In this document: piece after piece, positions 1,616-64,000 of the stretch
Layout: every line of letters begins with the position of its first letter
Position numbering within the stretch: position 1 is the first letter of the stretch
Assembly: GCA_964270895.1 (NCBI GenBank)
Contig: OZ185442.1
From: Podarcis filfolensis
Lineage: Eukaryota
DNA: 64,000 nt
Strand: one strand, 5' to 3'
The notes under the pieces: generated by a model
The model's database searches: none
What the model was told of the DNA's origin: nothing
What the model saw: only the letters and a program-made list of their open reading frames with translations
Made by a program: the position numbers and the translations under genes

Positions 1616-9494
<7,879 letters not shown>

Positions 9495-17316: not shown

Positions 17317-25643
<8,327 letters not shown>

Positions 25644-60827: not shown

Positions 60828-63610
60828 TCACGAATTCTGATTGATCGTCTCCCGGATCCATGGCACGACACAGCACACTTTCGCATACACACCCGGGTTC
60901 CCTCTCTGTGCGCACACTTGTGTTCCCCAGGAAACCACACCTTCGAGTTGCCCGCCGCAGGTGAGTGGGCCCCCAGAGTCACCCTGCATGGAGAAATGGA
61001 AGAAGTTTTCAGCAGGTGCACGTCTCCATTCTGTGTCTTCCTCTACATGGTGCTACCTGAACTCAGTTAAATGGCCTGCTTTGTTTTGCATAACATAGCA
61101 AGCATACTTGGGTCTGTTATGTTCTCCAGGGGAGAGCCATTGCTCAGTGGCAGAGTGTAGTTTTGTGTGCTTGAGGTTTCACATTCAATCTGGTCAGAGT
61201 GGTTGGTGGGGCTGCTTACCTGGCTTCCCAGCGCCAAGGCCTATAACCAAGAGGGAGAGGGTAGGAAGGATAGTGCAGTGCAGGTGCAGGTGCAGTGCAG
61301 GTGTGACAGCGGAGACAATACAGTGCACCTCACTGACCTCCCTGCCATCTTGCCCCTCTCCTTCTTGGCTGCTAGCAGTGGCCTCCTGCTTTGGGGAAGT
61401 ACTAGAAGAAAAATAGTACTAGAAGAAGTTGTCCTCATCTGAATTTTGAATATGGTTCTCTGTGCAAAAATGTACAGTGGTACCTCTGGTTACGAACTTA
61501 ATTCATTCCAGAGGTCTGTTCTTAACCTGAAACCATTCTTAACCTGAGATACCACTTTAGCTAATGGGGCCTCCTGCTGCTGCCACGCAATTTCTGTTCT
61601 CATCCTGGGGCAAAGCTCTTAACCGGAGGTACTACTTCCAAGTTAGTGAAGTTTGTAACCTGAAGTGTCTGTAACCAGAGGTGTCTGTAACCTGAGGTAT
61701 CACTGTACCAAAATGTGCACTAAAATGCATATTTTAGGATAAAATGTGCACAAAATCTTCCAAAAGAAATAAGCTGCCTATACTGGCCCCTTAGTTTGTT
61801 TTGACCCTAGAGAAGAGGTTGAGCCTAGAGAAGAGGTCAGCAGCATACTGTCCTGTAGGTAACATCCACCCACCAAGGCCTTTTCTTTCTGAAAAGTTTT
61901 CCCCATTGACCCTTTTCTTTTGGAAAACCTACAAGTAAGTTGCGTGGCAAGGTGGGATTGAAGAGTGGGATTTGGTGGAGTGGGTGCACCTCTGGTGTCC
62001 ATCGGTTGCTGATCTCTGCCTTGGAGACCTAAACACAGATTTGCTATCAAATTGTGGGGGGGTTATTGGGTCGTTGTTTTTATTTGATGATATATTTTGT
62101 GGTTTTATATTAGGATTTTGTTCTGTGAGCTACCCTGAGACCTCTGGGTATAGGGTGTTATATAAATTCAATAAATGATAACAACAACAAAAACACAGTC
62201 GTACCTTGGTTTTTTAAACGCCTTTTGAGTCGAACGTTTTGGCTCCCGAACATTGCAAACCTGGAAGTGACTGTTCCGGTTTGCGAACTATTTTTGGAAG
62301 CTGAACATCCAGCAGGGCTTCTGTGCCTTCTGATTCGCTGCAGGACCTTCCTGCAGCGAATCAGAAGCTGCGCTTTGGTTTTTGAATATTTTGGAAGTCA
62401 AATGGACTTCCGGAATCAATTCCGTTCGACTTCCAAGGTATGACTGTAATAATAATAAATTCCATACATTAAAAATAAATAAATGCAGAGTGATGCAGAA
62501 ATGGGAGGGAACAGGCTAGTAAATGAAAATGTGTGAATCTGACAGGGACCAAAAACAGATTGATCTGTCCGTGCTTAAGACCCTAACCCTTTTTCAACCT
62601 CTCAAAAGGTGTAGTCTATCTTCACATCAGCCCTCCTCTCACCTGGCAAGAGTCTGTGCCTCCTTCCTGTACTCCAGCACACATCATGTATGGTGTAATA
62701 GCACCACGATACGCCATATTACACTGTGATGTGGGGACAACGTTGACATCTGCACACTGTAGCTGAGCTGGAAGCTGAGCTGGAAGAGATATGTAGAGCA
62801 CCGAAAGGTCAGTGGTAGTGGTGAAACAGAAAAAAAAAGTCCAAGCAGACAGAAAGGGATGCTAAAAAAAGACTTTGAAGAACACATTGCTGAAAACTTT
62901 AATACCAACGACAAGAAGTTCTTTAGATATGTTAGTATCCCTTCCCACCTTCTAAAGTTTGCAAGCTTACCTTGAGGAGATCTGATGGTACCCCAGCCTG
63001 AGACACTGCATACACTCCCGTCAGTAGGACTGCTCGTAGGTAGGTTGATAGTCCTTACAGTTTCGGAGAGTCTGGCACAGGGGCGAAGTCGGAGAAGCAT
63101 GAAATCCTTGTCATTTTGTCTCCGGTTGTACCCTGGGTACACTTTAACTTCAGCGATATCCAAGCACTGTTCTCCCTGTTCAACCCTCTTCAAGTTGTGC
63201 TTTCCTAAGCACACCTTCATTCTGTATGGGGGCACAAGGCAAATGCAAAACTGAACAAAAGAATAGATTGTGGATGAGCTGTGTGAATGCTGATCACAGA
63301 TCAATCTAGTTTATGCCTCTTTGTCTAATGTGCAGATTGCCAGGCTGCTAAAGTAAGGCTGTTGCTTGTCCCAGAGGAAGCATTATTTCCCCCTCCATGT
63401 CGCTGCATCTTGCTACAGCCTTCACTTACCCTGGTCTGGGTCTGCAGTGGGCTGCTGAGAGCACCCAACATGGATGCACTAAGCTTCCTCCACAATAAAT
63501 GTTCCAGTTGCCTCTGCGTCCGGTTACAATGGCCGCCTGGTAAGGTCTGGACTGTTGTGGACAAACATACCCTCCAATTATACGATCAGCTGTGCCTGGC
63601 TGGGCAAAAG
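60828..63610 (-). CDS. Gene C: kallikrein-related serine protease (KLK13/KLK14-like appearance), 5'-partial (signal-peptide exon lies beyond the window), 16 Cys
   Basis: Exons 63610-63430 (181 nt), 63221-62971 (251), 62779-62643 (137), 60983-60828 (156). GT-AG, phases 1,2,1,0. Translation: ..FAQPGTADR|[231 protein letters not shown]. Intact triad and Asp189. Confidence 0.93.
61475..61705. mobile_element. Tigger-like MITE in gene C intron 4
   Basis: cagtggtacc...ggtatcactg with TA flanks. Confidence 0.8.
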
Positions 63611-64000
63611 CTGCAACAAAACAAAGCAAAAACTTTGTGGTTATTTCCGTCGTGTTTTTTATACCAGTGGTTTGTTTCAGGAACTCGATTTCATGTAAGC
63701 TTAATGTGGGCAAGATTTTAAAAATTGTGAAATAATGAGAGATCCTGAGTTTGTAATCTTGCCTTAACACAGATTGGTGGACCACAGGATTTCTGCTAAA
63801 AGAAGGAACAGAAGAAGTTGCCTTGTACCAAGTAAGACCATTGGTCCATCAGTATTGTCTACACTGGTTGGCAGCATCTCTCCAGGATTTCAGGTGGGGA
63901 ACATTCCCAGCCCTACCTGGAGATGCTGGGGTTTGAACTTGGGACTTTTTACATAGAAAGAAGATGCTCCATCACTGACCTGTGACCCTTCCACATTCAA

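Follow-up and report, generated by a model that had tools for sequence, protein, structure and literature searches.

The 64,000-nucleotide stretch of Podarcis filfolensis DNA analyzed here (GenBank assembly GCA_964270895.1, contig OZ185442.1; hereafter, the window) carries at positions 60828-63610, on the minus strand, a serine protease gene that we refer to as gene C. It is an intact member of a squamate-wide clade of KLK14-like (kallikrein-14-like) secreted serine proteases under purifying selection, and its five extra cysteines probably form two extra cross-links. The best explanation overall, to which we give a probability of roughly 0.7, is that of an intact and selected KLK14-like protease in which two bonds, Cys50-Cys111 and Cys66-Cys82 (Cys67-Cys82 in chymotrypsin numbering), are added to the usual kallikrein set. 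It should be borne in mind that gene C is a structural variant within a known protease family and not a new kind of gene.

Four exons of gene C lie in the window. They correspond to coding exons 2-5, each with an AG acceptor and a GT donor, and they join into a 241-codon open frame that starts in phase 1 and reaches its TGA without an internal stop. The catalytic triad His57/Asp102/Ser195 is intact in the motifs AAHC, D-x-M-L-L, and GDSGGP, the zymogen activation site falls between Arg15 and Ile16, and Asp189 indicates trypsin-like P1 specificity. All four exon peptides, searched one by one, matched the Pfam family Trypsin (PF00089) at 30-60 bits against a cut-off of 20.6; for the complete chain, the database proteins P0002 and P0127 were used. 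An AlphaFold2 (AF2) model, built from the P. muralis protein P0002:72-302, 2 residues away from the product of the window, had a predicted local distance difference test score (pLDDT) of 88 and a predicted template modeling (TM) score of 0.89, with pLDDT values of 93-98 in the N-terminal barrel; its best Foldseek matches were the double beta-barrels of trypsins and of KLK6 and KLK8 (TM score 0.86-0.93).

An earlier note on this DNA proposed that the gene was built on a KLK exon-intron scaffold, and this is what we see: five coding exons, intron phases I-II-I-0, the residues His, Asp, and Ser of the triad on coding exons 2, 3, and 5, and a tandem cluster of three trypsin-fold genes, all on the minus strand of the window (A at 1622-8003, B at 17344-23985, and C). 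Introns 2-4 were phased in the window itself; for intron 1, phase 1 follows from exon 1 of the Podarcis raffonei locus described below together with the 2-base start of exon 2.

Residue numbers were fixed by aligning the exon peptides with HMMER to trypsins and KLKs of solved structure; the alignments were ungapped over the relevant stretches. The exon 2 peptide places Cys50 seven residues N-terminal to His57, whereas exon 3, aligned to residues 47-124 of trypsin-3, gives Cys66, Cys82, Tyr91, Asp102, Cys111, Asn122, Ser128, and Cys136; the KVCC of gene C matches the KVCN of trypsin, giving Cys232 and Cys233. The number 68 is absent from trypsin numbering, and a cysteine two positions before Gly69 is thus 66 in trypsin but 67 in chymotrypsin, thrombin, and protein C. 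Because of this skip, Cys66 of gene C counts as residue 67 in the chymotrypsin and protein C schemes. The mature chain has 231 residues and 16 cysteines, including those at 50, 66, 82, 111, and 233, with a serine at 128. The earlier note had read the cysteines and the loss of Cys128 in just this way, and the four codons that it named are indeed TGT or TGC.

The first pair sits where plasminogen activators have theirs, again as had been claimed. A Cys50-Cys111 disulfide with the same numbering is formed in factor XII (FXII), HGFA, and tPA (PMC4418343) and in uPA (PMC5830721). The bond of gene C would do what it does in tPA, uPA, activated FXII (FXIIa), and HGFA: fasten the linker between the barrels to the beginning of strand beta3. 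The pair is convergent with that of the tPA group and was not inherited from it.

For the second pair, DSSP assignment of the AF2 model placed model residues 55 and 70 (Cys66 and Cys82) in strands 53-56 and 69-78, on either side of a 12-residue loop. They are therefore cross-strand neighbors within the hairpin bearing the 70-80 loop, which upholds the proposal that the two residues lie on adjacent antiparallel strands. The strand order in the chymotrypsin fold is beta3, beta6, beta5, beta4. Given this established topology, residue 66 should be able to reach only residue 82 among the extra cysteines; the pairings 50-82 and 66-111 were rejected because their strands are not adjacent. The loop from Gly69 to Glu80 presumably has the same length in gene C as in protein C. 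Since residue 70 is Lys and not Glu, it cannot bind Ca2+ in the manner of trypsin. In activated protein C (APC), both positions were mutated to cysteine, and the working Cys67-Cys82 bond that resulted, between two beta-sheets, stabilizes the loop at 70-80 that binds Ca2+ (Bae et al. 2007, as recounted in PMC6412604 and PMC6479968). Like this engineered form (APC-2Cys), the Cys66-Cys82 bond of gene C would clamp the two antiparallel strands of the 70-80 loop, fixing it covalently in place of Ca2+.

To judge from the aligned positions, the standard bonds 22-157, 42-58, 136-201, 168-182, and 191-220 would account for ten cysteines, that is, for five of the six usual trypsin/KLK disulfides. The two extra disulfides that the earlier note envisaged therefore hold up only in part: their positions match known bonds or adjacent strands, but the scheme leaves Cys232 and Cys233 unpaired. 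Cys233 is a fifth extra cysteine found throughout the clade and would have no partner within the scheme, and this gives most squamates an odd number of cysteines. In lacertids, the loss of Cys128 has freed Cys232 beside Cys233; in the AF2 model both occupy the first turn of the C-terminal helix, next to each other, where they could be either free thiols, a vicinal bond, or partners in an inter-chain bond. Taken together, the product of gene C would be a secreted, trypsin-specific KLK zymogen with two more cross-links than usual in its N-terminal barrel. The plain reading is that the extra bonds would stabilize it against autolysis and unfolding.

Orthologues were collected by a word search with the long open reading frame holding exon 3 (scored on the exon only), by a second search with the Sceloporus protein, and from cluster listings. 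They come from about 30 squamate genera, keep the catalytic triad and, but for one gecko described below, the five extra cysteines, and include lacertids, an amphisbaenian, a teiid, iguanians, a cordylid, a skink, anguimorphs, six geckos, boids, pythons, vipers, elapids, and a colubrid. When cysteine patterns were scored in an alignment of 150 relatives, 53 of 53 full-length models from squamates other than lacertids had cysteines at 50, 66, 82, 111, 128, 232, and 233, and 7 lacertid models had the same set minus Cys128 only; apart from one Gekko kuhli model, taken up below, the few deviating patterns reflect gaps where gene models are fragmentary. Of these seven, relatives from turtles, birds, and mammals have just 128 and 232, and the five-cysteine extra set is carried neither by them nor by tuatara relatives. 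Such constancy, which the earlier note had named as a check, is more than chance; the set arose on the squamate stem and has persisted since. The clade itself is supported at 100/99, and its stem is long (0.54 changes per site); in the midpoint-rooted tree, it is sister to turtle and bird KLK14-like genes, with mammalian KLK14 falling with the gene-B clade.

Two qualifications to the earlier account follow from this wider sampling. The count of 16 is right for this genome, but it is the lacertid derivative of a squamate protein with 17 cysteines, or 18 where a tail cysteine is present. Moreover, Cys82 was not gained together with Cys66, as had been supposed. Gene B (window 17320-17499 and about 19668-19916, minus strand) has Cys82, in SEQCITSAQ, and no cysteine at 50, 66, 111, or 233; as it is shared with this neighboring gene, Cys82 is older than the other extra cysteines.

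A natural variant bears on the 50-111 pair. The Gekko kuhli protein P0024 is without exactly Cys50 and Cys111 (Arg50 and Pro111) and keeps the other 16 cysteines and the triad. It is sister to the canonical Gekko japonicus protein P0149, and its branch is more than three times longer. No other lineage was seen to have lost either of the two residues. The joint loss is the co-variation that a bond between the two residues would lead one to look for.

Comparison with a sister species addresses whether the copy in the window is a sound one. The window DNA is about 96.5% identical to P. raffonei chromosome CM049757.1 (locus L001). No signal-peptide exon of gene C lies in the window stretch 63611-64000, but the canonical exon 1 is intact in P. 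raffonei, where it occupies L001:16612-16654, precedes exon 2 by about 6.7 kb, and reads ATG...MKLLAFGLLLMSSG and then G followed by GTAAGG, a phase-1 GT donor. We infer that P. filfolensis has its own canonical signal-peptide exon about 6.7 kb upstream, beyond the window. The mature protein of the window matches P. raffonei P0127:72-302 at every residue and is 2-3 residues off the P. muralis models. The exons differ from L001 at 6 of 725 sites, with all six differences synonymous and none non-synonymous, and the introns are 1.4% divergent, a pattern that points to purifying selection among Podarcis species. Within L001:16533-16929, two RefSeq models, XP_053255884.1 and XP_028597456.1 (P. raffonei and P. 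muralis version 1), read the DNA of exon 1 in another frame, which explains their odd N-termini. A second signal-like first exon, MFLSCCYLLILEM, lies at L001:16891-16929 and is used in XP_028597456.2.

Four observations weigh against the best explanation given above. First, Cys50 and Cys111 were lost jointly just once, the branch concerned is long, and the record carries the flag UNVERIFIED_CONTAM. Second, Cys82 occurs without Cys66 not only in gene B but also in its tuatara, tortoise, and alligator orthologues, which means that Cys82 can be unpaired or can have another partner, such as a cysteine in the C-terminal tail. Third, most squamate orthologues have an odd count of 17, so at least one cysteine must stand outside intramolecular bonds. 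Finally, the Podarcis RefSeq models have aberrant N-termini without a canonical signal peptide.

The rival that survives best, although we think it rather unlikely, is that the extra bonds are redox or allosteric switches, strained cross-strand disulfides whose reversible reduction would adjust both the activation domain and the 70-80 loop, with Cys233 (together with Cys232 in lacertids) as a reactive thiol. What keeps it alive is the Cys50-Cys111 bond of uPA, a strained and labile disulfide of the -RHstaple type that is missing in several crystal structures (PMC5830721). Bonds of this type typically join adjacent antiparallel strands or constrain beta-loops, and the cross-strand type of disulfide, to which both bonds proposed for gene C would belong, is often redox-labile (PMC5830721). 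The 67-82 bond of APC, according to PMC6412604, changes exosite function without abolishing catalysis, and the odd cysteine is itself conserved across squamates. All of this would fit a switch, but conservation alone cannot tell a structural bond from a regulatory one. A bolder version, which we likewise regard as doubtful, is that a single origin about 200 million years ago gave a squamate KLK the 67-82 clamp that was later engineered into APC, a tPA-type 50-111 bond, and a conserved surface thiol at Cys233, which together would serve as a redox-controlled switch or a handle for a covalent partner and not just as rivets, with Cys232-Cys233 of lacertids, left by the loss of Cys128, as a vicinal redox pair.

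It is also conceivable, if quite improbable, that the cysteines are paired differently, with Cys82 bonded to Cys111 and Cys50 and Cys66 free, or with Cys82 bonded to a C-terminal or inter-chain cysteine. Cys82 and Cys111 are at the same end of the neighboring strands beta5 and beta6, and Cys82, which predates Cys66, co-occurs with a terminal cysteine in gene B, which ends in ...NRAADTC with the last residue 17 positions past Trp237, and likewise in its orthologue from the tortoise Chelonoidis. This suggests that gene B may have a disulfide from Cys82 to its tail, reminiscent of the 91-245e bond of snake venom proteases. Tail cysteines also recur in the gene C clade, where total counts are odd in most species, at three non-homologous places after Trp237: at +9 in Pogona, +11 in geckos, and +13 in boids (P0179, P0009, P0010, P0148-P0150, P0022, and P0174); colubroid snakes have Tyr at the boid position. 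Against such pairings, G. kuhli dropped 50 and 111 jointly and retained 66 and 82, residue 66 has only strand beta5 (with residue 82) and strand beta1 as neighbors by the established topology and the DSSP assignment, and the lacertid protein is without a tail cysteine.

That the lacertid copy is decaying towards a pseudogene, its cysteine pattern without current function in this genome, is scarcely credible and we reject it: Cys128 is lost in lacertids only and the Podarcis gene models have non-canonical N-termini, but the frame, splice sites, triad, and Asp189 are intact, as are the canonical exon 1 and its donor in L001, the differences from P. raffonei are synonymous only, and Ser128, whose AGT codon is one base from TGT, is common to Podarcis, Lacerta, and Zootoca at about 95% protein identity.

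The positions of gene C features are collected here.

Table 1. Exons and diagnostic codons of gene C in the window, with the basis of each assignment
Feature	Positions	Strand	Content	Basis
Coding exon 2	63430..63610	-	starts in phase 1; propeptide FAQPGTADR, Arg15-Ile16 cleavage site (IIGG), Cys22, Cys42, Cys50, His57 (63447-63449), Cys58	translation, Pfam, alignment to trypsin and KLK6, AG/GT
Coding exon 3	62971..63221	-	Cys66 (=67), 70-80 loop with Lys70, Cys82, Tyr91, Asp102 (63104-63106), Cys111, Asn122, Ser128, Cys136	translation, ungapped alignment to trypsin-3, splice sites
Coding exon 4	62643..62779	-	Cys157, Cys168, Cys182, Asp189 (62652-62654), Cys191	translation, Pfam, splice sites
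Coding exon 5	60828..60983	-	Ser195 (60975-60977), Cys201, Cys220, Cys232, Cys233, stop (60828-60830)	translation, Pfam, alignment to trypsin, splice sites
Cys50 codon	63468..63470	-	TGT	codon read, alignment to trypsin/KLK6
Cys66 codon	63209..63211	-	TGC; trypsin numbering, 67 in chymotrypsin/protein C numbering	codon read, trypsin-3 alignment
Cys82 codon	63164..63166	-	TGC	codon read, trypsin-3 alignment
Cys111 codon	63077..63079	-	TGT	codon read, trypsin-3 alignment
Ser128 codon	63029..63031	-	AGT; Cys128 in all non-lacertid squamate orthologues	trypsin-3 alignment, orthologue alignment
Cys232 and Cys233 codons	60870..60875	-	TGC TGT, adjacent	translation, alignment to trypsin

Some further observations concern the exons and the neighboring genes. 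At the start of exon 4 (window 62768-62791) the near-duplicate ctcagcttccag/ctcagctacag provides two in-frame acceptors 12 nt apart; the downstream one is used by some orthologue models, and models accordingly differ by four residues (AQLP or equivalent) at this point. The 37-loop of exon 2 (window 63500-63530) has a basic insert of 4-5 residues, GRRGNW, which is conserved across the squamate clade and not present in the turtle, bird, and mammalian relatives compared; it may be an exosite. Gene A is KLK-like, with the plain 12-cysteine trypsin/KLK pattern and none of the extra cysteines. Runs of N occupy 2080-2215 (136 bases) in gene A and 22441-22582 (142 bases) in gene B.

As for novelty, the genes are already annotated in public databases, where orthologues of gene C go by the names kallikrein-14-like and trypsin-3-like, and a three-gene KLK14/KLK14L/KLKL cluster has been described in Anolis (PMC3707919). 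The cysteine pattern was not found in the literature searched: a search on lizard kallikrein-14 gave no match, no paper noting the pattern came to light, and the cysteines of reptile KLKs are not treated in PMC8705180 or PMC3707919. The pattern matters because extra disulfides in S1A proteases mark functional specialization, as with the 50-111 bond of tPA, uPA, and FXII and the 91-245e bond of snake venom proteases. Gene C is a natural and deeply conserved KLK in which a convergent 50-111 pair stands together with nature's own version of the 67-82 clamp built into APC. It offers a ready evolutionary experiment on what happens to activity, exosite function, Ca2+ independence, and stability when the 70-80 loop is fixed covalently. 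Natural variants are at hand for comparison, namely the lacertids without Cys128, G. kuhli without Cys50 and Cys111, and paralogue B with Cys82 only. A role in skin shedding or reproductive secretions, by analogy with mammalian KLK14, is speculation.

Finally, it is worthwhile setting gene C beside the proteases that it resembles. With the KLKs, especially mammalian KLK14 and the Anolis cluster mentioned above, it has in common the S1A fold, five coding exons with phases I-II-I-0, and a tandem cluster in one orientation, as well as the Arg15 activation site, Asp189, Lys70, and the five standard disulfides listed earlier. To this plan it adds its five cysteines and the GRRGNW insert, and in lacertids it is without Cys128. 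Human trypsin-1 and mesotrypsin, in our alignment, are also without Cys128; they have lost both partners of the 128-232 bond, whereas lacertid gene C retains Cys232, with Cys233 adjoining.

The likeness to tPA, uPA, FXIIa, and HGFA is confined to the cysteines at 50 and 111. Those proteases are multidomain mosaics; they have an interchain Cys122, an inserted 110-loop ahead of Cys111, and neither the 22-157 nor the 128-232 bond. In contrast, gene C encodes a signal peptide, a short propeptide, and a protease (about 255 residues in the orthologues, with no mosaic domains such as kringle, EGF, or fibronectin), has Asn122, and shows no insertion before Cys111. Membership of the plasminogen-activator group was rejected for want of the mosaic domains and of Cys122.

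Snake venom serine proteases, of the KLK1/SVL lineage, are likewise squamate members of the KLK superfamily in which one lineage-specific disulfide has been added to the trypsin set. Theirs joins Cys91 to Cys245e, whereas gene C has Tyr91 and ends in INQNS without a tail cysteine, and we rejected its membership of this group on these two points. Gene C stands on the non-toxin, KLK4-15-like side and is not a toxin gene. The nearest match to its second pair is APC-2Cys, which has cysteines two before Gly69 and two after Glu80 on the strands of the 70-80 loop, just as gene C does. That bond is man-made, in a Ca2+-binding, vitamin-K-dependent protease; the pair in gene C is natural and squamate-wide, on a Lys70 loop without a trypsin-type Ca2+ site.

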